Below the pieces are notes generated by a model. The model was not told where the DNA came from. It saw only the letters and a list, made by a program, of their open reading frames with translations, and did not search any database. The translations under genes were made by a program, and so were the position numbers. A stretch of DNA of 64,000 nucleotides from Blastocladiella emersonii ATCC 22665 (lineage: Eukaryota; Fungi; Blastocladiomycota), in assembly GCA_025594325.1 (NCBI GenBank), contig JANHCV010000010.1, positions 1,550,001 to 1,614,000 of the forward strand. The letters are read 5' to 3'. Shown piece after piece: positions 1 through 40,563 of the stretch (position 1 is the first letter of the stretch; each line of letters begins with the position of its first letter).

Positions 1-568
1 CGGTCTTGCCGATCCACGTCTTGAGCACGATGAGGCCGAGAATGAACTGGGCGAGGATGCCGACCGAGACGAGGCGGAAGTTGACGGCCGAGCGGTGCTT
101 GGAGGTACCGTACAGGAGGCCGAGGATGACGATCAGGCCGAGGAGCGAGCGGGCGCGCTCGAGCTTGGTGCCGCGGTCCGAGTCGGGGATGATGATGATC
201 GAGACAACGGCGATGGCGAGGGTCAGGGCGCCGAAGAGCGCGGCCTTGATGAGCGGGGACACGGCCTCGAAGGGCTTGAAGATGGTGCCGAAGACGACGG
301 CGAAGGGCTTGGTCAGCGTGTCGTTGGAGATGCGCTTGGTCAGGATCTTGGCGATGATGCAGAAGTAGAGGAAGGCCGGGAAGGCGATGGTGTCGGGGTG
401 GTTGCCCCAGGCGAAGACGAGCCACACGGTCAGACCAATGACGATGATGGCGTCGACGACGCGCTGCAGGGTCGAGTCCTTGAACTCGGCCGCGGCCGCG
501 GGAGCGGGCGCAGGGGCGGCCACACCGGCCGCCTTCTCGAGCGACTTGGTATCCTCGGATGCGGTCAT
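1..568 (-). CDS. Concentrative nucleoside transporter (CNT/SLC28 family), 5' part; runs off the window start
   Basis: My minus-strand translation from ATG at 568 gives multiple TM helices and RARSLLGLIVILGLLYGTSKHRSAVNFRLVSVGILAQFILGLIVLKT, the conserved CNT N-terminal core motif. This frame is not in the ORF track. Confidence 0.85.
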   Translation of the reverse strand, partial: MTASEDTKSLEKAAGVAAPAPAPAAAAEFKDSTLQRVVDAIIVIGLTVWLVFAWGNHPDTIAFPAFLYFCIIAKILTKRISNDTLTKPFAVVFGTIFKPFEAVSPLIKAALFGALTLAIAVVSIIIIPDSDRGTKLERARSLLGLIVILGLLYGTSKHRSAVNFRLVSVGILAQFILGLIVLKTWIGKT

Positions 569-2021
569 GCTGGAGGTGGCGGGCGTGGGCGGTCGTTAGC
601 TGGTTGCTCGAGGAGTGCGAGCGAGCGAGCGAGCGCCACCCGTCGAGAGCAAGCGCGAGTGCTGCTAGAGCGCCGAGGCGCGGCAGCAACAAGCTCGAGC
701 AGGGACGACGTCGACGAGGTGGGAGACAGCGGCAGCGCTGCGGGACATACGTTGATTCGAGGAGGAAGGAAGCACAAGCGAGAGAAGGGAGGGAGGGCGG
801 GGGCCCCGGTGGTATTTATGTTGCAGGGGGGACAACAGGGCGGGGCGGCAAGCGGGGCGGCGGCGGCGAGGCCCGGGTGGTGGCGAAAAAGCGCAGTCCC
901 GAGCCACAGTGCGCGACTGACCAATCACAGGGCCGCCCTCCGCATACCGAATATTCGCCGATCCCGCCCTACTGCTCAAGCTTTAGGTTCCCCGGCCGAG
1001 TCAGGCGGCACACATCGTGACACGGCCGCCGCGATCCCGCTTCAGAGTTTTGGACAGGGACCCGTGCGATCCTCCATCGTCTCGTCGTTGTCGTTGTTGG
1101 CGGTGAGGCCACTCGCTCATCGTCGAGGTCCACGATGGCCATCATCCATCGCGGCGGCCGCGACCATGGCCATCGTGGGTCTCGTGCTTCCCCGCACTCT
1201 GGCGCTCGGCCGCGCCCCACCACTGAACCTGCCACTCCTCCAGCCCTCGCTACGCGCCTCGCCGTGTGCCTCGTGGTCGTCGACGACGAGGGTCAGGCGG
1301 CGTGCCGCGCCAACGTTTCAGATTGCCTGCAACATCGGAACGAACCGGGTGTGGCGTTCCGATCCTGCTTGTCCGCTTCTCCGAACATTCAACCTCGACT
1401 ACGCCGACGACATCACCAGTGTTCGCCGCAGTTCCATGTGGGCGTCGCTGATGCGGTGCGCCGACCGGCTCGTTTGCCCGCGAACATGGCCGCGACGCCC
1501 GCGACGCCCACGGGCGTTGGCGTTGCCTCAAGTTGTGCTTGGACTCGCGCCGGGGCGTCGACTGTGGCGGAGGTCGAGGTGGAGCTACGCCATCATTCTC
1601 GCCGTCTCTTCGTCGCGAGGCCCCGCGTGCTCGACGTGTTGCGCCCGCGGCCGTAAGCGCGGTGGTGGTGGCGGCGCCTGCTGATGCAGCTTCCATCGCA
1701 CCCACGAATGTCGCAGCCTCTCCGTCGCAGCGCGTGATGCGTGCTGTGATCGTCGCCGTGGTGCGGTGCGGGGGCGGCGGCTGCGCCACAAGTTCCCACG
1801 GTCGAGTGTTCGCGGCCGCGTGGGGCCAAGCGGGACCCGTGGGCGCCGCGGGCGCGAGCGACTCGCGAGGGCGCGGCATCCAGGGACGCCAGATGGGATA
1901 TCGCGCGCGCTGCGCCGAGCGAAAGATCCCGGACCGCGACCGCGCGATCCCGAAGGGTGCAGGATGCAGGGTGGAGGGTGTGAATACTAAGTATACTACC
2001 GCTACGTTACACGGGCTCGAG

Positions 2022-3293
2022 TTACATCTCCATATCCTCCCACTCGCCCTCGCCGGCCGCGCCGGCACCGTCCTCGTCGTCGGCGTCCCCGAAAACGCCG
2101 TCGGCGGCGATCCGGGCGAGCAGCTCCTCGACGTGGGCGAGCAGTGGTGGGTCGTCGTGCTTCTCCTGGACGTAGATGCCCTTGGCGCGGTGCAGGCAGT
2201 CGATGGCCTCGGTCCACCACTCGGCGCGCGACGACCGCGCCTCCATGACCTCGTCGTCGGGGAACTCGACGGCCAGCTTGACGCCGGCGACCTCGGCCGT
2301 GGCCGGTCCGGGCTCGCCCGCCACCTCGCCGAACAGGAAATACGCCCACCCGAACAGGTACCACAGGTCGACGGCCTCGTCAAACTCCTGCGCGCAGATC
2401 CCGAGCACGTCGATGGCGCGGCCCCACATGCCGAGCTCGAGGCACAGCCGCGCGGCGTTGAGCCGCGACTCGTACGGCGGGAGGTGCGGCGGCGGCGTGT
2501 TCTCGACCTCGTGCGCGCGGTCCGGGTCCGCCAGCGCCTGCATGTACGACATGAAGGGCGCGACCCACAGATCGAGCCCGCGCTGCATCGTCGCCTTGGC
2601 GTCCGCCGGCTGCGAGTTGCTGATCTGCACCGACGTCAGCGTCAGGTACGGGTTCGGGTTGGACGCGTCGAGCGCGATGGCCCGGTGCAGCACCGACAGG
2701 CACGTCTCGGCCGCGTCCGGCTCGAAGCTACGTCACAGTGGGTCAGTGAGCAGGAGAGCGCGAGTAGCCTTTCTGGGAGGGATCCCGCGTGCGCACCAGA
2801 GATCGGTGAGGTAAATCTCAGCAATCGAGCACAGCGCCTCGACCGTCTTGTTGACGAGCTCAACGCGGGTCTCGGCATCCACGCCCGCCGCGAGCTTGCC
2901 CTCCATGATGCGCACGGCGAGCGTAAAGTACTCGACGGCCTGCTTGGCGCCCGCGAGCTGGCCGAGGTACAGGACAACAGCCTCGTTGGTCTGGCACTGC
3001 GCGTAGTACCGCGAGAAGCACGCGAGCGCGGCCTCGGGCTCGCCCTGGTCCATCATGGCGGCGCCCGCGAGCTCGAGCGCGGGGAGGTGGTCGCCGTTCA
3101 CCCCCAGGATCGTCTGCAGCAGCGGCATCGCCGAGTCCAGGTCGCTCTGCTCGTAGTGCGCCAGCGCCTGCGCGAACAGGGCGTCGAGGTCCTGCGGCGG
3201 CTGAGGCGCTGCGGGAGCGGCGGCGGCGGGGGCAGCAGGCCCGGATCCGCGTTGCGCGACGCGGCGGCCGCCGACTTTCTTGGCTTTGCCCAT
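2022..3293 (-). CDS. ACL4: TPR protein, assembly chaperone of Rpl4
   Basis: Two exons with intron 2728-2796 (GTGCGC...CTGAC...TAG). Splicing restores ALCSIAEIYLTDLCFEPDA, the ACL4 signature. TPR repeats and an acidic C-terminus are present. Confidence 0.8.
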
Positions 3294-3656
3294 GGTGTCG
3301 ATGCGTGTGATTCCGTTGCGTGCGTCACCGTGCGCCGTCGTCGTCGTCGCAAAACAGGGAGGGAGAGCGGGAGGATGGCGACGAGTGGCGCGCGACTCGG
3401 CGTTCGCCTCACGTGCGCCCATTGGACCCGTCGCCAGCCACCCTGCGATCAAAACTCATTCGGATGAAGCATCAAGATGAGCCGCATTCGGCGGCGTGAC
3501 TTGCAGGTTGTTTGGCGGCACGCGCCGCGGCGAGCAGCGAGCAGCGAGGGCAGACCCGACTTCGACCGCGATCGGCCCGGTTCCCTCCTCTCCCCTGCAT
3601 CGTAAAAGCACACACACATTCTGCCACGTAGCTTTGGACGAACCAACGCAACCACC

Positions 3657-5015
3657 ATGATCCGCCGCTCCGTCGCCAACTACGCCCGCGCCGAGCTGCG
3701 CCGCCGGACCGCCGCTGCCGCTGCCACGTCCCTGGCGCCACCACCATCCTGCGCGCACGCGACGCAGCGCCGGTATGCGTCGGGCAGCGCGGGCCGCGAC
3801 GATGGCGGCAACGCTGGCCCGAACATGGGTCCGGGGCGCGCCTTCATCGAGGGCTTCGTGACGTCGATCCGGCGCCAGGTGCAGGAGAACAAGGAGCTCA
3901 AGGACAACGTCAAGCTGCTGGCCGACGAGGCGACGCGGCTGTCCGAGTCGGACTCGATCAAGAAGGCCAAGGAGCTGGCCGAGGGCGGCACCTCGGCCAC
4001 GTCCGAGGCGCTCAAGAAGACGGGCGCGGTCGTCGGCAAGGTCGCCGAGACCGTGTCGGAGACGGTGACCAAGGTCGCCGAGACGCCCGTCGGCAAGGCG
4101 GCGACGACCACCATCAAGAAGACGACGCAGGCCGTCGGGCAGGCGGCCGAGGCCGCGGTGCGGCCCATCACGTCGTCGGAGCAGTACAAGCAGGCGTCCG
4201 AAGATCTTGCCAAGGCGATCCACCAGGCGTCGTCGCGGTACGGCGGCGTCACGTCCAAGCACTACCGGTCGCTGATCAAGCGGCAGCGCGAGCTCGACTA
4301 CGAGATGCGCGCCAAGATCACCGAGAACACGGAGGCCATGGGCGTGGTGCTGCGCCCCGACTCCAAGTGGAAGCGCAGCTGGGACGACTTCAAGGAGTCG
4401 AGCCCGCTCGCCCGCAACATGTTCTCCCTGCAGCGCAAGGTGGCCGAGTCCGACAACCTGGTCGTCTCCTGGGGCCGGTTCTTTGTCGAGTCGTTCCAGG
4501 ACCGGTTCGGCGGCCTGTTCGAGGAGACGGAGACGGCCAAGGCCATGTCGCTGCTCAAGGGGCTCGACCCGACCTTCAACCAGGAGGCGTTCCTGCGGGA
4601 AGCGCGCGAGTTCATCCTGCCCGAGGTGCTCGAGGCGTGGCTGGCCGGCGACCGCGAGACGCTGACGCGGTGGTGCAGCGAGGCGTCGGTGCGCGTGCTG
4701 ACGGCGGGCCACGACGAGCTCGTCAAGCAGGGCATGGTGTCGGACTCGCGGCTCGTCGAGCTCAAGGGCGTCGAGCTGGTCTCGGCCAAGGTGCTCGAGA
4801 ACAACATCCCCGTGCTCATGGTGTCGTGCACCACCCAGGAGGTGATCCTGTACCGCGACAAGGTGTCCAAGGAGGTGCGCCTCGGCAAGGAGGACGTGAT
4901 CATGCGGTGCTCGTACGTGGTCGTCCTCACCGTCGAGGAGGGCAACGACGACCCCATCACGCGCGGGTGGAAGGTGGTCGACCAGGCCAAGGTCGCCGGC
5001 GGGTCCATGGTCTAG
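3657..5015 (+). CDS. TIM44: Mitochondrial import inner membrane translocase subunit Tim44
   Basis: Intronless 452 aa. Arg/Ala-rich presequence, FIxxxRxQVQENKEL N-terminal region, and a C-terminal Tim44 domain (DPTFNQEAFLREAREFILPEVLEA). Confidence 0.93.
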   Translation: MIRRSVANYARAELRRRTAAAAATSLAPPPSCAHATQRRYASGSAGRDDGGNAGPNMGPGRAFIEGFVTSIRRQVQENKELKDNVKLLADEATRLSESDSIKKAKELAEGGTSATSEALKKTGAVVGKVAETVSETVTKVAETPVGKAATTTIKKTTQAVGQAAEAAVRPITSSEQYKQASEDLAKAIHQASSRYGGVTSKHYRSLIKRQRELDYEMRAKITENTEAMGVVLRPDSKWKRSWDDFKESSPLARNMFSLQRKVAESDNLVVSWGRFFVESFQDRFGGLFEETETAKAMSLLKGLDPTFNQEAFLREAREFILPEVLEAWLAGDRETLTRWCSEASVRVLTAGHDELVKQGMVSDSRLVELKGVELVSAKVLENNIPVLMVSCTTQEVILYRDKVSKEVRLGKEDVIMRCSYVVVLTVEEGNDDPITRGWKVVDQAKVAGGSMV

Positions 5016-7687: not shown

Positions 7688-8422
7688 ATGAAGATCTTCT
7701 CCATCCTCGTGCTCACGGCCGCCGACCGGCCCGCCGAGGTGCGCGCCGCCGAGTTTGAGCTGTCGCAGTTTGGCTTCTTCCAGCGCGGCACGTACGCATC
7801 GTCCTGCGCTCTGGGAGTGTTGGCGGAGCGTGGCGCTGACCCATACTCGCGCGCAGCGTCCAGGAGTTCATGAACTTTACCGCCAAGACGATCGCCGAGC
7901 GCACGCAGCCTGGCCAGCGCCAGTCGGTCGAGCAGGACGGTGCGTGCTGTTCTCTCTGGTACCGTTTGCTCACCCCTCTGACGTCTCTGCGTCCCCCGCA
8001 CAGACTACATGATCCACTGCTTCGTGCGCCCCGTCGACAAGCTCGCGGGCGTGATCGTGACGGACCGCGAGTACCCTCTGCGCGTGGCGTTCACGCTCAT
8101 CAACAAGTCGCTCGACGATTTCGTCGCCAAGTTCCCCGCGTCGGCGTGGTCGGCGCTGACCCCCGCCACGGCCAACCCGCAGTTCCCGCTGCTGCGCGAG
8201 AACCTCATTAAGTACCAGGACCCGCACTCGGCCGACAGCCTGCTCAAGGTGCAGAAGGAGCTCGACGAGACCAAGGTCATCCTGCACAAGACCATCGAGT
8301 CGGTCCTCAAGCGCGAGGAGAAGCTCGACTCGCTCGTCGAGCGGTCCAACGCCCTCTCCATGTCCTCGCGCGCCTTTTACAAGTCGGCCAAGCAGACCAA
8401 CTCGTGCTGCAGACTAATGTAG
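7688..8422 (+). CDS. YKT6: R-SNARE Ykt6 (longin + SNARE, prenylated)
   Basis: Motifs ELSQFGFFQRG, KYQDPHSADSLLKVQKELDETKVILHKTIESVLKREEKLDSLVERS and a C-terminal CCRLM (CCAAX). Two introns. Confidence 0.96.
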
Positions 8423-8740
8423 GTCCTGCGGCATTCGCCCGTATCACCCCCATGAGCTTGACCTATAAACCTGTACACTGCTTCGTTACGCTGACCGGTC
8501 CCTGACGTGCTGCGCCACTCATGTGATGATGCCCCACGTCGCTGGCTTCGGCCTCGGCCATGGGCCTTTGGTGAAGATCGCGAGGTGCTCTCCACCTCGC
8601 ACACGCGTTCTCAAAGAGCGGTGGCCGCGGTGAGGTGGGAGACTGCCGCGGCGCGAACGACGCGACGCGTCTTCTCCGAGCCCTTCTTCCCTCCCCCCCC
8701 CTCCTTCCTCCCCTCGCCCCGTACCCATGCAACCACCGCC

Positions 8741-11700
8741 ATGCTAACCGCGACGACCAAGGCGCTCCTGAGCCCGATCGCCGACGCGGTCGCGCAGCTC
8801 GTCGTGATTACGGCGCACGCCGAGCTGCACCGCACCCCGATCCCGGACCTGCGCGATGTCGCCGCCCTCGTCGCCGAGCACGTCCACAAGCTCGCCAGCA
8901 TCGGCATGGGCCTGATCGACGCCGACGCGCTCGCTGCCGAGACCCGTGGGCACGTCGACGTGTCCAAGCTGCAGGCCGCCATGAACGAGGCGTGTATCTC
9001 GGGTGCGCACTCCCACGTTCTGTCTGCGTGAGGGAAGACTCTGACGCTCGCCCGTGTCATTTAGTCGTCAACGCGGCCAACCTGCTCGTCGGCGTCGCGC
9101 AGACGCTGTCGCTCGACCCGCTCAGCGCCGCGGGCCGCGCGCAGCTGGTCGACGCGACCAAGGGCATCCTGCAGGGCACGCAGGGGATCCTGAACACGTT
9201 CGACGACTCGGAGGTCCAGAAGATCGTCGTCGTCGCGCAGTCGCTCATCACGCACGTCGTGCGCCTGCACGAGACGGCCAGCACACCCGGCGGCGGGCCC
9301 GTCGCGCACTTCGTCCCGCGCACCCGCGACGTCGCACAGCAGGCACTGTTCCTCTACCACCTCGTCCACGCGCGGATCCCGGAGCTCCTGTCGCCCGCGC
9401 TCCAGAAGATCCTCGCCCAGTGGAACGCGCAGCTCGACCGCGCCGCCGTCGCGGGGACCGCGGCGGTCCAGGTCGTCGCGACGCATCCGGATTCGGCGCC
9501 GCATATCGGGATCCTGGGGCGGCATGTGAACGACGCCGCCGAGGCGTGCCGCAAGATCGTCGAGGTCGTCATGATCGAGGACATGGCCGAGGGCGGCGCG
9601 GCTGGGTCTTCTTCCGTGTCGGACGCCCTGGCACCCTCCACCTCGGCCGGTTCCTCATCCGCGTCCTCGTCGCTGGCGACCCCCGTCTGGCGCGACCCGC
9701 TCGACCAGGTGACCGCGGCCATCGCGCGCGTGTCATCCGCGACGTCCGACATCTCACCTTCCGCCGACTCGGCCGTCGCCGCCGCGACCGTGTCCCCCGC
9801 CGTGACCCCGGCCCTCGCCGCCGTCGCCTCGCTGAGGTCCGCCATCGAGTCGCACCGTACGTGGTCCGCCGCCGACCCGGAAACCCGCGCGACGCTGTGC
9901 GCGACCGCTGACCTGCTCTCGTCCGCCCTCGCCGCGCACGCCGACCCCGCGTCCCCCGTCTCGCTCGCCGCCCAACGCGCGGGCCGGATCCGCGCACTCG
10001 CCGATACCCTCGCGGGGCAGCTCACCGCCGCCGAGACGCGCGCGCGCGGGATCGAGACGACGGCGCTCGTCGACGCGCTGGCGCGGCTGCGCGCGCATGG
10101 GGCCGAGGATGGCCAGAAGACGCTCGTCGAGAAGATGCTCGCGGACCCGACCCGCGCCGCGTCAGGCGAGTTCGAGGACGTGGCGCGCGCCGCGGTCGCG
10201 GGCATGTACCGCGCGGGCGTCGCGCACGAGGTCGCGGCCAAGGTCGAGGCGCTCGTGCCGAGTGTCGTCGAGGCCGCGCAGGTGCTCGCGCTCGAGGCCG
10301 CCGGCGGAGGGGCTGATTCGGATTCCGCGGCCAGCAACGCGGTCAAGGAGTACGTCGCGCACGTCGTCGGCGAGTGGGACGCGGCCGTCGAGGCGGCGCA
10401 CCGCATGGTCGTTGCCACGGTTGCCGCGGATACGCTGATTGCGTCGTGGAGTACGTGGTTCTCCGAGCACCTCGTAGGATCCTCGGGCTAACCCTTTGAC
10501 CCGTCGGTAGTGACCCAAGTCGACCAAGTCACGACGCACATCGCCGCAGCCAAGACGGCGCTCGCCACCACGCCCGGCCACGCGGCCTCGGCCGCCGCGC
10601 TCAAGGGTCACGTCTCGAAACTCGCGTCGCTCCTCGCTGGGTTCGTGGGAACGGTCCAGCGCGAGGCCGATAACTCCGAGGACGCGGCGTACCGCGGCAC
10701 CCTCGTGTCGCTGCTCGCGCGGGCTCCGGCCCCCGCTGCGGGCGCCGACGATGGGTACGCGGACCGCGTCAAGGCGTTTGTCCAGGAGTGCGCGACCGCG
10801 GTCGGCGAGGAGCACGGGATCACGCTCGCCCTCGGACCCATCGCGCCCGTCGCCGCGGCGCTCGTCAGCGAGCCCGCGCTCCCGCCGCCCCCGCCGTCTG
10901 CGCCGGTGGTCCCCGAGCCGCCGGTCGTCGAGGCCGTCACCGCGGCCGTGGCGCAGCTCGCCATCGCGGTCCCGCCCCCGGCCCCCGAGCCGATCGTCGA
11001 CGAGGACGTGGTGATCGTCGAAGCCGACGCGCCGCAACCCCTATCACCCGAGGAAGCGCAAGCGAACCCCCTCCGCGCCGTCGCGCAGGACCTGATCGTC
11101 GAGACGTCGCGGTGGAGCCGGTCGGGCAACGACCTGGTGCACACGGCGGCCGAGATGTCGTCGCACCTGGCGACCATCGCCGACTACTACCGCCAGTTCT
11201 CCCCGCAGGCCAAGCTGTCGCTCGTCAGCAGCACGCGCGACGTCGTCAAGCTCGCCGACACGCTGCAGCGGCTCGTCCAGGCGCTCGCGAATGCGTGCAC
11301 CGACCGCCGCTTGCGACTCGACCTCCTCGCGGCCGCCAACCGCGTCCCCACGCTCTCGCAGCAGCTCAAGATCCTCGCGTCGGTCCGCGCCAGCGCCGGC
11401 GCGAACGTGGAAGGCGACTCGGAGCGCCAGATCGTGACGTGCGCGCAGAACCTGCTCGTCGCCGTCAAGGACGTGCTCGGCAAGTCCGAGGCCGCGAGTA
11501 TCCGCGTCAACGCGCGTACCGTCGGGAACGTCGGGCTCGCCGTCGTCAAGTTCAAGCGTAACCTTTTCCGCGGGCGCAAGGGCGCGGCGACGGGCGCGGC
11601 GGCGGTGCCCAGGCTCCCGACCACGGTCGAGGAGAAAGAACCCGCACCCGCGCCCGTGACGGCTACGCCGGCGACGGTGGGCGTGGGCAAGGCGTGGGCG

Positions 11701-34484: not shown

Positions 34485-35821
34485 TTACGCCTTGGCAGCC
34501 ATCGCCGCCGCCTCCTCCGCGATCTGCTTGGCGGCCACGAGCGCGCGGGTCCAGTCGGCCTTGAGATCCTCCACATCCTCGAGCCCGACCGACACGCGGA
34601 CCAGCGTCTCGGGCATCGTCGGGTCGTGCTGGAACCGCCACTCGGCGAGCGTCTCGACCCCGCCCAACGACGTGGCCGGCCGCGCGAGGTGGAGCAGGTG
34701 CGGGACCGCGCGCGCCGCGTCGCGCGAGGCCAGCTCGACGGCGAGCACGGGCGAGTGGCCGCCGGCCATCTGGCGCTTCACCCACTCGGGCTGCGGGCCC
34801 AGCGACGCGTGGCGGACGCGCGCCAGCGTGCCCTCGAGCCCGGGCACCTCGCCGTCGACGACCTTAGCGAACCAGCGCGCGAGCTTCGCGGCGGTCGCGG
34901 CCTGCGCGCGCACGCGCAGCGTCAGGGTGCGCAGGCTGCGCAGCAGCAGCCACGCTTCGAGGGAGCCGAGCGTCGACCCGACCACGGTGCGCTCGCCGCG
35001 CAGGGCGCGCGCGGTCGCGGCGTCGCGCGTCGCCACCACGCCGCCGAGGATGTCCGAGTGCCCGCCGTAGAACTTGGTTGCGCTGTGCACGACCGCGTCG
35101 ACGCCGGGGAACGACAGGCAGAACTGCAGCGGCGGCGGCGCGAGCGTCGCGTCGACCACGAGCCGCGCGCCCGCTGCGCGCACGGACGAGGAGACGGAGG
35201 CGAGGTCTGTCACGTCGCCGTACGGGTTGAGCGGGGACTCGAGCAGCACGAGGTCGCCGGCGCCCAAATCGGCGGGGAGGGTGTCGGTCGGCGACAGCGC
35301 GACGTGCACGCACCCCGGCCGGTTGCGCAGGTACTCGCGCAGGCCCGCGAAGGTCCCGTGGTACCCGAGCTGCGTCACGATGCGCCGCGGCGTGTAGTGG
35401 TGCATGACTACGCGCTGGCGGGATCAGTACCGCGGTCCACGGGTGTCGTGCGCGCGGGCAGCGTACCAGCGAACAGCGCCGCGAGTCCGCTCGCGTACAC
35501 GACGGCGTGCGCGGGCCCGGTGGACCCGGGGTACCCGCCCTCGAGGGCGCCGAGGACCGCCTCGACGCGGGTCACCACGGGCGTCGTCATGCGCGAGTAG
35601 ATGTACTCGTTCTCTTCACCCTCCGCGTGCCCGTGCCCGCCCGCGGCGGCAGCGGCCTCGACGTGCCGCGCAATCAGCGGGGCCAGGTCGGCGGGGACGC
35701 GCTGCGTGAAGGTCGAGCTCATGGCGATGGGCAGCGTCACGGGCGCCGTGTCGCGGCAGTCGGCCACGCCCGCGTCGGCGTGCACTAGCAGCGTGCGGAG
35801 CGGGTCGGTGGACGAGGTCAT
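34485..35821 (-). CDS. Cys/Met metabolism PLP enzyme (cystathionine gamma-synthase/lyase family)
   Basis: Motifs PIAMSSTF, YIYSRMTTP, LESPLNP, VVDATLAPP, HSATKFYGGHSD (PLP lysine) and ATSLGGVETL. One intron near 35410-35465. Confidence 0.92.
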
Positions 35822-35885: not shown

Positions 35886-35893
35886 TTTATATA
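35886..35893 (-). promoter_or_regulatory. TATA-box-like element of the Cys/Met PLP gene
   Basis: TATATAAA on the minus strand, 65 bp upstream of the ATG, in very GC-rich surroundings. Confidence 0.55.
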
Positions 35894-35943
35894 CGGCGCG
35901 ACGGCGGCCACGGCCCGGCCGACCGCGTCGCGCACCGCCGAGG

Positions 35944-35967
35944 GTTCGGCATCAGGGGGGCGACAAC
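35944..35967. repeat. Left TSD (9 bp) + left TIR (15 bp)
   Basis: GTTCGGCAT|CAGGGGGGCGACAAC. Confidence 0.95.
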
Positions 35968-36116
35968 GGCCATCCGCGTGCCATAAAGTCGAGTGGCTGC
36001 CACTCCTTTCAACGCGTCCCCCACGCGTCTCGCTCGCGCGCGGCGGTCAGCTTACCCTCCCGTCGACAGCTCCTTCCGCTTCGCTCATCGTGCATGAACG
36101 ATTCCCACTCTATGCA

Positions 36117-37131
36117 ATGAAATGGCCACTCCATGAACATGTGATGTCGGAGAAGAAGTTCCGCGAATTTATGCTCGAATTCATGACCCCGACCGACATC
36201 ACGCGCGTCATGACGTTCCGGCGACGCATCGCCCGCGAGGAGGCGCAGATGTTCCGAGAGATCCTGCGCCAGTCGACTACCGCGCGAATCGAGCACTGCC
36301 ACCGCCGCGCCCTCGCCCTCGCTGGCCCGCAGGACCATCCAACCGCTTGGGATGCGGCGCGGGGTGCGGCGCTCGGCACGTTTGCGCGCGCCGAGTCGGA
36401 CCTGAAGCGTAACCTCGCTAGCGCCATCCAGGAGGTGAACGCGCGGTACGAGCTGCACATGTACAAGGCCGACTGGTACTGGGGGTATCGCGTGTGGGAC
36501 GAGCCGACGCGCTACTGGCTCGCGTCCATGCAGGAGTACGAGACGGGTGTGGTCGGACGTTTGCACCTCGAGCCTCGACGTGCCGAGTTTTGTCCCGCTC
36601 ATCTCCTACTCGGAGCTACCCTCGAGTCCATCGACTTCTTCTGCCGAGCTCGTCCAAGGGCTGGGCTCCGGCTCGGGCACAACGGCCGCACCCGCGCCGG
36701 CGTACGGTCTCCACGCGCCCGCCGACCTCGCCGGCGCCACGCACGGCCTCGACGCGCCCGCCGACCTCGCCGGCGCCACGCACGGCCTCCACGCGCCCGC
36801 CGACCTCGCCGGCGCCACGCACGGCCTCGACGCGCCCGCCGACCTCGCCGGCGCCACGCACGGCCTCCACGCGCCCGCCGACCTCGCCGGCGCCACGCAC
36901 GGCCTCGACGCGCCCGCCGACCTCGCCGGCGCCACGCACGGCCTCGACGCGCCCGTCGACCTCGCCGGCGCCACGCACGGCCTCAACGCGCCCGTCCACC
37001 TGCCCGCTGCGGCTCCCGGGTTCCACACGCACGCCGCTCAACCTGCCGTCGCGGTCGGGTTCGGTGTCCCGCTCGCCCAACTCGGGCCTCTCGCCGCTGC
37101 CGCCGCCCATCAACTGGATCCGTTCCTGTAA
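36117..37131 (+). pseudogene. Transposon-internal ORF1 of unknown function (frame break near 36550-36650), with a 13-aa repeat block
   Basis: Coding-like MKWPLHEHVMSEKKFREF...WYWGYRVWDEPTRYW. After a frame change or intron, the best codon-biased frame reads (ADLAGATHGL[D/H]AP)n to TAA at 37129-37131. Confidence 0.5.
36703..36999 (+). repeat. 39-bp minisatellite, about 7.5 copies
   Basis: Unit GCCGACCTCGCCGGCGCCACGCACGGCCTC(G/C/A)ACGCGCCC starts at 36721, 36760, 36799, 36838, 36877, 36916 and 36955. The variable base runs G,C,G,C,G,G,A. Confidence 0.95.
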
Positions 37132-37156
37132 GCGCAAGCTCAACTTCGAGATCCGC

Positions 37157-40100
37157 ATGGCTTCGCTGTCGTGCAAGCAGCAGCCGCTGTCGCGCTCGTT
37201 CTCGAACTTGACCTCCCATCATTGTCCATTGCCCGCATGATTTCCTCCCTGTATATACTCAGATCTATTCACCGTCCAATGCTTCACTCCCTTGTTCGCC
37301 ACGCTGCGCTCTTCGACGTGCGGCGGGTCCAAGGACGTGCAGTCGCTCGCCATTCTCGCCGTGCAGATCAAGGACAAGGAGGGCATCGAGCTCCTCATCC
37401 AGCTGGCCACGGCGCTGTCCAAGGACGGCGAGCTCCCCCCGCAAGCAGTTCATGTTCCTACATATTCGCGACCAAGTCCGCGGCGTTCTCGGCATCACGA
37501 TCCAGTTCTACGATCCCGCGACGATCGAGGCGTGGTGCTACTTCCACGCCGAGGGCGGCGGCCACAAGGCGTTCCGGTACCTGCGCGGGCCCGGAAAGGC
37601 CGTGCCCGCCGGCCTGACTGACGGCGTCCGTCACAACGCACACGGCACCCCGCACCTCATCAACCTGTTCATCCCGGACACGCGCACAGTGCAGCGCAAG
37701 GCCAAGCAGGACCTGGACAAGAAGAACCCGATCGGGCTCCAGTACGGCCGCATCGAGGACGTGGCCAAGTACGTGACGGAGCAGAAGGCCAAGGGCAACA
37801 TCGTGGAAGTGTGTGTCGCGTTCGACGGCACGGACAAGCCCAACGAGCCGCGTCACTATGAGGACGGCATCGTCCAAGGCGGCCCAGAGTTTGGTAACCT
37901 CGTCAAGGCGTTCAAGCTTCTAGCGGAACCCGGTGCGGCTCGCTTCGTGCGTTATTGTCGCTCGATACGCGCGCCCTGACGTCCCGATCCGCGTGTAGTC
38001 CACGACGAGCGCTTCAAGGACGCGTCCGACCCCAAGTTCGCGCTCCCCGTTGAGCTGATCGACAAGCTCAAGGTCGACGAGCTCAACGACGCGTGCGATG
38101 CGGCCGAGCAGGCCGTGTCCGAGTTCCACGCCGCGCCAGCCGCAGCAGCAGCCGCGGTCGGGTCGGAGAGCGGCGGCGCGGCACCAGCACCGGCCACCGC
38201 CCTCCCCGGTTTCAACGAGAAGGACAAGCTTTGCAAGTGCGCGCAGCAGGTCATCGACACGCTGCGCTACCTCTGCGAGCGCGCGAACGTATACTCGGAG
38301 GCGCTCGCTGAAAAAGAGGAGAGGAAGCGGAGCAAGATCGAGAGCTCCTAGACCTCGGACGCCTCCAAGGAGAAGGCCAAGGTGGCCCTCGCCAAGCTGA
38401 GCGCCAAGTGCAGCCGTGTCCATATGTACGCTCAACAGGTTTGTGGTCGGCGATCATGACCGCTTACCTTTGCTGTGTCTGATTAGGAACATTTCCTGGC
38501 TCGAGCTCCACGCGCAGCAGCTCGAACAGCAGGTGGCCATGGTCATGACTGAGCAGGGCCCGGTCCAGCGCCCAACCAAGGTTGCCCTTGATCTGCTGCA
38601 GCTCATCATCGAGGCGCACGATGGTGCCCACGACGCGCTCGTGGCCGACACCGCTGCGGCGACGAAAAATCTCGTCTTCACCGTGACCGACCACGCGCTC
38701 AACAACCTGCAGTTCGTGGTCGCTCGCCTTCTCGTCGCATCCGAGTCCGCCAGCATCATTCTACCCGTACTGCGGTACATCAACTACGAGCTCAAGAAAG
38801 CTGGTATCTCGGTGGCCGCCCAAGCGTACGTTCTCCTCGTCCCACATCAGCGGCGCTTGCTGACAGGGAGTTTGCTTGTATAGGAGCGACGGCTCGAACG
38901 CCAACTGCCTCATGGGTCGCGGACCTGGCGCAGCGTGCTACCCGCAGATGGTTCGTGACGCGCAAGCGCAGTGGAAGAACATGGAGGAAGATGCGCTGCA
39001 CGAGTGGTTCAACTGCAACGTCGATTCGGCCATGTCGCTGCTCAACAACTCGAGCGACGTCAAGGCCAAGTGGAATGAGCACTACTTCACGACCTGGAAG
39101 AAGGACGTGCACATCAAGGCCATCATCGAGGTCCGCGACAAGCTGAGACGGAGCCCTTCCGCGACGGTCACACAGGCGGCGTTCACGAGCGTGCAGACGG
39201 TGCTGTGGATCGACGCGCGCCTGAAGCTCAACCCCAAGCACGACGTACGGCGAGTACCATGGGTTCCTGTGATTCGAGTCGGGCTCGACGGTCAGCTGCA
39301 CGAGATCGTGACGGTGCACGACCGCGACCACGCGTTCAAGCGCGCCGCGATCCACTTCAGCGAGAGCTCCATTGAGGGCAAGACGGACCACACGCTGTTC
39401 GACAAGATCATCAAGCTGTTCCCCGAGGTGCTCGGCCCAAAGTGGAAGAAACGCGATCGACAAAACGTTCCCGAGGCGCTACGGCTGTTCTCAATGGAGT
39501 GCATCGACAAGGTGCGCGAGGCGGCCGGACCCAACAACGAAAAAGGTACTGGACTCTGCATCATCCTCAACACCTGCCGGAAGCTCCAGGACGCGATGAA
39601 CAGCTCCGACCTCGACATTGAGCAGCGGCACCAGCTCGTCAACGAGGCCGGCAGCATCTTCTACCTCGCGTTCCTCGAGAAGTGGTGTTTGGCCGACGGC
39701 GGGTCGCCGACCAAGTACGTGTCCGGCATCCCCGCCTGCACCATCACGGCCCTGTTCAGCATCATCGGCGCGTTCAAGGCCTTTGACGAGCGCTACGCTC
39801 GCGCCAACCCAGAGCCGAACGCCAAGCCGTGGCGCCAGCGCTTCCTCACCACCGACATGGTCGAGGCGTACTTCTCGGGCTGCCGCAACGCGTGGGGTCA
39901 GGACGGGCGCGCCAAGTCCAACACGCTGCCGCGCATCGTGATCCTGCTCGCCATGAGCAAGGCCGACCACTCGGCCGAGCAGCTCGCGAAGCCGTTTGAC
40001 GAGCTCGGCGGGTTCGTCGGGTCCTTGTCGCGGCGCTCGATGATCGGCGGGTACAAGCGCAACACGGGCGTGTGGGGACGATGCGCGGCGAGGGATGGGC

Positions 40101-40369
40101 ACGCGGCACTCCGATCGCTCCCGCCGCCCCCGCCGACCGCCCGCGCAAGCGCCCAGCAGACGAAGTCGAGGGCGGCATCGAGTCGAGACCGAGCAACCGC
40201 GGCTTCCACCGCAACGGCACTCATGTGGGTCCCCAGTCGTAGGCACGGTCGGCGAGATCGTGCCGGGCGCAGCTTCGCGCCGCGCGCAGAGTCCAACGGG
40301 TCACGGGCCCGCGAGGGAAGTCAGAGATCGGGCAGTTGCAGCAAGAGAGAACATTTTTGTAATGCATAG
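37157..40369 (+). pseudogene. Spliced, disabled P-element/THAP9-like DDE transposase (start and end approximate)
   Basis: Catalytic motifs: VCVAFDG (D, 37824), KAGISVAAQASDGSNAN (D, 38888), DRDHAFKR (DxxH, 39320), DRQNVPEALRLFS, RFLTTDMVEAYFSGCRNAWG (E, 39863). Introns 37933-37998, 38426-38486, 38826-38883. Lesions: frameshift in the C-run at 37435-37440 and in-frame TAG at 38349-38351. Confidence 0.8.
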
Positions 40370-40539
40370 TTATCATGTTTATTGCGATCCACGGGCTTGC
40401 CGAGGTCGAAGAGGGAGAGAAGAGCGGCCGAGGCGAGGTGGCGGGTGGCGCAAGCGGAGGACTGAGAGGCGGATTGGAGTGGCAGTCTATGGCACGCGTC
40501 GGCTTCCCTGTGTCGATCATCGCTCCCACAGCGCGCGCG

Positions 40540-40563
40540 GTTGTCGCCCCCCTGGTTCGGCAT
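40540..40563. repeat. Right TIR (15 bp) + right TSD (9 bp)
   Basis: GTTGTCGCCCCCCTG|GTTCGGCAT. Confidence 0.95.

Follow-up and report, generated by a model that had tools for sequence, protein, structure and literature searches.

We describe a DNA transposon of 4,602 bp, bounded by perfect 15-bp CAG...CTG terminal inverted repeats (TIRs), at positions 35953-40554 of a 64-kb stretch of the genome of Blastocladiella emersonii ATCC 22665 (assembly GCA_025594325.1). The whole stretch is called the window below, and coordinates refer to it unless they carry an L-number for another locus. The element is almost certainly a recently transposed copy. It is very likely a P-type element, lying inside the P (P element/THAP9) superfamily or just beyond its limits, and one of a broken lineage that was mobilised in trans; as such it widens the known family and founds no new one. 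To judge from its sequence, the window copy is a non-autonomous member, with a broken open reading frame (ORF), of a small multi-copy family.

Element ends and additional copies

The left TIR (CAGGGGGGCGACAAC, 35953-35967, plus strand) and the right TIR (40540-40554, minus strand) are exact reverse complements, and they are the sole two matches to this sequence in the window when up to two mismatches are allowed. The element is flanked by identical 9-bp target-site duplications (TSDs), GTTCGGCAT, at 35944-35952 and 40555-40563. The direct repeat of the window copy can also be read as 11 bp (GGTTCGGCATC), since it extends into the TIRs by their outermost C and G. Two further copies resolve this reading. 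One (L001:4709-9104) is 99.6% identical to the window copy and is flanked by the exact 9-bp TSD AGCGCGGCG; the other (L002:3745-8156) is 98.2% identical and is flanked by GGCCCTGCT, likewise exact and 9 bp long. Both are full-length and begin and end with the same 15 bp, the right arm of L002 carrying one additional C. Three copies at unrelated loci, with pairwise identities of 98.2-99.6%, therefore share identical termini and have three different exact TSDs, all of them GC-rich and none containing TTAA. Lengths of 8, 10 and 11 bp were ruled out, as each fails in at least one of the three copies. We take 9 bp as the true length because it alone is exact in all three.

An earlier note on this DNA, made from the letters of the window, had described perfect CA...TG TIRs, an exact 9-bp TSD that could not be read as 8 bp, and a recent insertion, and all of these descriptions held. 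It had proposed other copies as a check on the TSD length, with duplications of 7-8 bp and other termini as the unfavourable outcome; L001 and L002 both gave 9 bp and the same ends. Its view that a 9-bp TSD is atypical stands in so far as this length falls outside the classical 7-8 bp, but the P lineage of Drosophila buzzatii offers a precedent, with a TSD of 9 bp for the P element and of 8-9 bp for BuT5, its miniature inverted-repeat transposable element (MITE) (PMC3698922). A 9-bp TSD is thus unusual for P but not new.

Inside the TIRs are two motifs that recur in inverted orientation. On the left are CGCGTGCCATA (35975-35985, plus strand; inverted partner at 40488-40498), a candidate binding site for the transposase, and CTGCCACTCC (35997-36006, plus strand; inverted partner at 40476-40485). 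The right-hand pair, GGAGTGGCAG and TATGGCACGCG (40476-40498, minus strand), is the mirror image of the left pair, in agreement with the two motifs reported earlier. The arrangement is asymmetric, with the motifs 22 and 44 nt from the left end and 56 and 69 nt from the right end, and the core of the second motif, GCCACTCCA, occurs again at 36125-36133. When the two 200-nt subterminal regions were compared, at least two inverted matches of at least 10 bp appeared in 0.15% of dinucleotide shuffles.

Read data point to additional copies. In run X1, represented by Logan contigs from the sample that was assembled, the internal contigs had a word depth approximately 5-7 times that of the flanks, which is a rough guide, and contigs of runs X2 and X3 pass from the right TIR (window 40555 onward) into a flank, GGCGGCCCTGCAACGAG..., that differs from those of the three assembled copies. 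Because of this internal depth and the fourth flank at the right TIR, more than three copies are probably present, and at least one of the others is probably full-ended. No empty-site joint at 35952/40564 was reported in the reads. A joint at 35790>40656 was considered as an empty site and rejected as repeat noise, its shorter side being only 21 nt long and the TSD not fitting. The insertions in the window and at L002 (the latter flanked by genes for mitofilin and an amidase) are both intergenic, and three sites are too few for a claim of target preference.

Transposase gene structure

The intact copy L002 has an annotated transposase model, P0007, of 1150 aa in five exons, which was reproduced exactly by translation; its four GT-AG introns measure 205, 66, 61 and 58 nt. 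Exons and introns of the window copy, all on the plus strand, were mapped from this model. The predicted window introns, each GT..AG, lie at 37064-37262 (199 nt), 37933-37998 (66 nt), 38426-38486 (61 nt) and 38826-38883 (58 nt). The last three are the canonical introns recognised in the earlier note, and the first adds a fourth upstream. The first ATG is at 36144, and the annotated L002 model begins at the equivalent of 36210.

Exon 1 (36144-37063) encodes an N-terminal region without a THAP domain. It includes a tandem repeat of 7.6 units of 39 bp (36704-37001, plus strand) that encodes 13-aa units (…APADLAGATHGL[DH]…). The number of units varies among copies, the window copy exceeding L002 by 234 nt and L001 by 195 nt, and the differences preserve the frame in every case. 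Exon 2 (37263-37932) encodes the P-type helix-turn-helix (HTH) region (FYD...AFRYLRG...LFIPDTRTVQRK) and the first putative catalytic aspartate, D1. Exon 3 (37999-38425) encodes an Ala/Leu/Glu/Lys-rich, predicted-helical insertion between D1 and the second aspartate, D2, and exon 4 (38487-38825) encodes the end of this insertion and then the part of the RNase H core made up of beta3, alpha1 and beta4 (NLVFTVTD ... KKAGISVAAQA). The remainder falls in exon 5 (38884-40242): D2, a second helical insertion, D(2)H, an insertion domain resembling the GTP-binding domain (GBD) of P transposase and carrying the RDRQNV motif, the predicted catalytic E and the C-terminal tail.

Transposase motifs and insertions

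All the motifs that the earlier note had listed in P-element order were found at the positions it gave. D1 lies in VAFDG (37815-37829; D codon 37824-37826), D2 in SDGSNAN (38885-38905; D codon 38888-38890) and D(2)H within HDRDHAFK (39317-39340; D(2)H at 39320-39331), followed by the RDRQNV motif (RDxQNV..A..LFS) in RDRQNVPEALRLFS (39452-39493) and by the E motif TTDMVEAYFS (39848-39877; predicted catalytic E codon 39863-39865). In P0007 the corresponding residues are D407, D700, D(2)H 844-847 and E1025, whose catalytic roles are predicted from the motifs. The order of P-type HTH, D1, D2, D(2)H, RDxQNV..A..LFS and D.VE..FS is that of the P signature string. An alternative placement of D2 at LWIDARL was rejected, as the relative P0003 and a Pfam match put D2 at SDGSNAN / SFDGGS.

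An exhaustive search with HMMER of 1.8 billion representatives returned only four relatives, all from metagenomic or Logan sequences: P0003 (E 1e-12), P0004 (E 2.6e-8), P0005 and P0006. The region of P0007 from D(2)H to E (817-1041) aligns with P0004 at 27% identity over 228 aa (BLASTP E 1e-17; phmmer E 2.6e-8). Alignments with the environmental relatives show no variation in D1, the proline and lysine of the HTH, the H and R of D(2)H or the RDxQNV motif, and the E motif is also conserved. Word-indexed searches for homologues, started from the window ORF and from two alignments, found only paralogues and two Logan relatives beyond these four, and two metagenome scans with the pattern W[YK]xRD[RIK]QNV gave 49 pattern matches, none of which was confirmed. 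An AT-rich eukaryote of ~35% GC, represented by the Logan contigs L003 and L005 of run SRR7244338 and seen in that run only, carries at least four relatives (P0004, P0006, P0008 and P0009). They have the same architecture of D1, helical insertion and D2, and were split by a prokaryote-style gene caller at probable introns or frameshifts.

The spacing of the motifs is 272-293 aa from D1 to D2, 124-144 aa from D2 to D(2)H and 181 aa from D(2)H to E, and only the last interval fits the P signature string. The corresponding distances in the Drosophila P transposase (DmTNP) are 73, 36 and 192 aa, and those in THAP9 are 70, 40 and 199 aa. Two insertions, both predicted to be helical, are present: one of ~200 aa after strand beta2, and one of ~100 aa between D2 and beta5. 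The earlier note had described a separation of D1 and D2 by well over 200 aa that included a coiled-coil-like stretch, in line with what we find, and the second insertion, between D2 and D(2)H, was absent from its account. The relatives L003 and L005, in which D1 reads LLDETD / NFDETD, align with the fungal protein at D1 and the HTH motif and then enter a long helical stretch before beta3. Both insertions are features of the family and not quirks of the window copy.

In keeping with the earlier description, no THAP domain was found, either as a PF05485 match in Pfam scans or as a C2CH pattern in P0007. The N-terminal 290 aa of P0007 had no meaningful neighbour in the atlas and no Pfam match.

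Relationship to the P superfamily

Four independent lines of evidence, all of them remote, connect the fungal transposase to P: language-model features, a Pfam match below threshold, the structure of a homologue and the motifs described above. Every family-bearing language-model neighbour of the annotated L001 protein, P0001, belongs to a TNP-like/P transposase cluster (score 0.92-0.94, 189-198 shared features), and the neighbours of the homologue P0004 are likewise TNP-like. The AlphaFold model of P0004 has a predicted template modelling score (pTM) of 0.62, with residues 35-377 confident. In a Foldseek search of the PDB with this model, the P transposase structures 6p5a and 6pe2 alone were matched at high probability (0.99). 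Matches to clusters of the AlphaFold database (AFDB) reached E-values down to 3.8e-8; all informatively named ones at probability 1.00 were 'P transposase', 'TNP-like GBD' or 'THAP-type', and the other named rows had unrelated labels (Tudor, EF-hand, YqaJ, NUBP1). The top shape match in the atlas was a TNP-like_GBD cluster. The modelled helical insertion domain between beta5 and alpha4 appears to have the GTP-binding-domain fold of P transposase. In addition, an ORF piece just upstream of P0004 (L003:1528-1734), covering beta3-alpha1-beta4 ahead of the second aspartate, gives a specific match, though one below threshold, to PF21787 (TNP-like_RNaseH_N) with an E-value of 0.004 over profile positions 66-121 of 137. 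The relatives L003 and L005 also retain D1, the HTH motif and the D1-D2 insertion. The earlier proposal of a divergent P-superfamily lineage is thus supported through these routes, with no significant sequence-profile match.

The B. emersonii element resembles the Drosophila melanogaster P element (6P5A/6PE2) in its cut-and-paste character, CA-starting termini, subterminal inverted motifs and spliced transposase gene, and its transposase keeps the DmTNP order, from HTH through D, D and D(2)H to the helical insertion domain and E. It differs in having TIRs of 15 bp instead of 31 bp, a TSD of 9 bp instead of 8 bp and no THAP domain, and the similarity of the two transposases is too low for Pfam and HMMER. 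Human THAP9 and zebrafish Pdre2 have in common with it the signature string with [C/D](2)H, as well as an insertion domain ~190-200 aa long ahead of the catalytic E; human THAP9 differs in its N-terminal THAP finger, its domestication and its lack of TIRs. Like the P/BuT5 system of D. buzzatii (PMC3698922), the fungal family has a 9-bp TSD, a multi-exon transposase, very short TIRs accompanied by sub-TIRs, and defective partners that appear to be mobilised in trans. The D. buzzatii element, however, is from an insect, has a THAP domain and normal P spacing, and is recognisable by sequence, the fungal family being far more divergent.

Among fungi, P elements are rare and of low copy number, a Pfam-based survey having counted 11 copies (PMC5751038). 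A P element has been reported in Allomyces, which is also a blastocladiomycete, and the Repbase references for P are from the Pucciniales and Allomyces (PMC5751038). Those elements were found through PF12017 and PF12596 (PMC5751038), whereas the B. emersonii family is invisible to Pfam; we set the two apart by description only.

Lesions and probable mobilisation in trans

Relative to the intact copy L002, the window copy has lost 38 nt after 36553, which shifts the frame in exon 1, and it also has an extra C at 37435 that causes a +1 frameshift in exon 2, a GAG>TAG change at 38349-38351 that leaves a premature stop in exon 3, and a 1-nt deletion after 40073 that causes a -1 frameshift in the tail, from which the ORF continues to 40369. 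The first three lesions are common to the window copy and L001, and the fourth is private to the window copy. The earlier description of a lightly disabled gene, with one frameshift and one stop, is therefore too mild, the comparison with L002 giving three frameshifts and one stop. Among the reads, a G is missing at 40073 in ~119 of 798 read depth, or approximately one copy, and read contigs carry a G variant at the TAG site in other copies. The ratio of nonsynonymous to synonymous substitution rates (dN/dS) between copies is 0.64-0.70, which is near neutral.

Because the window copy and L001 share three lesions yet differ in locus and TSD, we infer that an already broken lineage transposed. 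This defective lineage was most likely mobilised in trans, and recently, by an intact copy, with gene conversion as the alternative. In the intact transposase of L002, 13-aa tandem repeats occupy the N-terminus where P has a THAP finger, and a P-type HTH and an RNase H-like core follow. Two additional helical insertions split the N-terminal half of this core, and the helical insertion domain that separates D(2)H from E is the counterpart of the GTP-binding insertion domain in DmTNP. GTP, a cofactor of synapsis and transposition in the P superfamily, may also serve the fungal enzyme. Such a protein may recognise the 15-bp TIRs, the mirrored subterminal motifs or both, excise the element and reinsert it at a 9-bp staggered cut, the repair of which would produce the 9-bp TSD.

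The annotated model of L001, H9P43_009285 (P0001), contains a 63-nt 'intron' (L001:6838-6900) that takes the final AG of the premature TAG as its acceptor, and in addition a 60-nt in-frame 'intron' (L001:7794-7853). The splicing of P0001 around the stop is an annotation artefact.

Alternative explanations

Several results weigh against the reading of a P-type element with a trans-mobilised lineage. Neither the B. emersonii protein nor any of its relatives passed the threshold of a Pfam family, and no transposase family reached it among seven window pieces, the full paralogue, sub-domains and four relatives (the TNP-like models considered were PF21787, PF21788, PF21789, PF12017 and PF12596); the PF21787 match noted above is itself below threshold, at 17.9 bits against a cutoff of 24.6. 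Searches of PDB sequences with the single protein and with a family profile returned only noise and no P transposase. The Foldseek E-value to 6p5a was only 0.2, and a search of the Swiss-Prot AFDB gave no credible match, THAP9 being absent from the results. For the complete B. emersonii protein, AlphaFold with a 5-sequence alignment gave an unusable model (predicted local distance difference test, pLDDT, of 36), and because of this failure the fold evidence is transitive, passing through a relative of 27% identity. The absence of a THAP domain and the D1-D2 and D2-D(2)H spacings, which break the P signature string, count on the same side. Finally, the introns have the annotators' gene model as their one source, and the dN/dS values indicate little selection on the ORF.

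One alternative is that the element represents a separate, unnamed superfamily, sister to P. It would have the insertion-domain fold and the D(2)H/E motifs in common with P and be set apart by the lost THAP domain, the two additional insertions that interrupt the RNase H core and the 9-bp TSD. The failure of every Pfam TNP-like model at threshold would fit such a group, as would the broken spacing of the signature string at two places, the HMMER result, in which the only relatives among the 1.8 billion representatives were four metagenomic ones and none was an annotated P transposase, and the many structural neighbours in the AFDB that are named 'uncharacterized proteins'. We nevertheless consider it unlikely. 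P transposase is the closest solved structure by a wide margin, all family-bearing language-model neighbours are TNP-like, and the sub-threshold Pfam match is to the P family and at the expected place. Superfamily limits are, moreover, conventions, and P already spans TSDs of 7-9 bp.

Mutator-like elements (MULEs) have TSDs of 9-11 bp, and a 9-bp TSD is a hallmark of that superfamily. They are also ubiquitous in fungi (PMC5751038). The 9-bp TSDs of all three copies could accordingly be read as those of a MULE with a superficial resemblance to P in its motifs, yet the protein has no match to the MULE/Transposase_mut families of Pfam (PF10551, PF00872), the 50 best structural matches include no Mu-type structure, the TIRs, with 15 bp, are short, and the motif set (D(2)H, QNV..A..LFS and D.VE..FS..R) together with a helical insertion of ~180 aa before E is P-like. 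This makes a MULE extremely improbable. Only slightly less so is another superfamily with D(2)H, such as hAT, Kolobok or Transib/RAG-like elements, of which the insertion domain would be merely a common topology. Kolobok elements have TTAA as TSD, hAT elements 8 bp and Transib elements 5 bp, none of which agrees with 9 bp and no TTAA; for hAT, the Pfam scan gave no dimerisation domain (PF05699), and Hermes was not among the top 50 structural matches. A different kind of alternative is that the window copy is actually autonomous, its lesions being homopolymer assembly errors or annotation choices. Of the four lesions, two affect a single nucleotide within a run of C or G (37435 and 40073), and L002 also has homopolymer indels, at 36187 and in the right TIR. 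Homopolymer errors do not account for the 38-nt deletion or the GAG>TAG change, however, both of which are found in L001 too, and in X1 the form that lacks the extra G at 40073 is present in read contigs of approximately one-copy depth. We regard an autonomous window copy as very unlikely, and retain the reading of a P-type element whose broken lineage moved in trans.

Significance

P elements are a textbook transposon family that is regarded as rare and patchy in fungi. Strongly remodelled P-type transposases that lack THAP escape surveys reliant on Pfam, so that counts of the superfamily outside animals may be too low. The two core insertions raise the question of how the RNase H fold tolerates them, and the absence of THAP that of what replaces it in end recognition. 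As a young family with an intact copy, the element is also a potential transposon tool for a fungal phylum that is poor in genetic tools. For annotation, H9P43_009285, H9P43_010043 and a 'midasin' chimera described below are gene models derived from transposons.

A broader reading, which we put forward tentatively and hold to be somewhat less than probable, is that of a widespread, Pfam-invisible P-like clade that is still active in B. emersonii. Its members would occur in zoosporic fungi and in at least one other eukaryote, that of ~35% GC in SRR7244338, and the 'uncharacterized' neighbours in the AFDB may extend it. It would be defined by loss of THAP, a helical insertion of ~200 aa that splits the RNase H beta-sheet, a second insertion before beta5 and 9-bp TSDs. 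Continued activity in B. emersonii would follow from the mobilisation of a defective lineage in trans. If this reading is true, a native tool for insertional mutagenesis in the Blastocladiomycota is conceivable.

Neighbouring gene and transposon fragments elsewhere

A gene for a PLP-dependent enzyme of Cys/Met metabolism has its ATG at 35821 on the minus strand, and the window element lies 123 bp upstream of this codon, just beyond a TATATA box at ~35886-35895. It is possible that the insertion affects expression of the gene.

Fragments of the transposon were also found at L006 (JANHCV010000004.1, 557378-; L006:1-11517), a locus with a 100% identical inverted duplication of at least 3,685 bp. 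Its arms lie at 1-3685 and 7833-11517, the left arm extending past the edge of the locus, and each arm has an identical ORF of 384 aa with no Pfam match. The 4.1-kb spacer holds end-less transposon fragments in which window 36926-37299 is joined to 39323-39520. The model P0002 at this locus, annotated as 'AAA ATPase midasin', is a chimera whose first 60 aa come from the transposase. The inverted duplication itself may be a large palindromic element or an assembly artefact.

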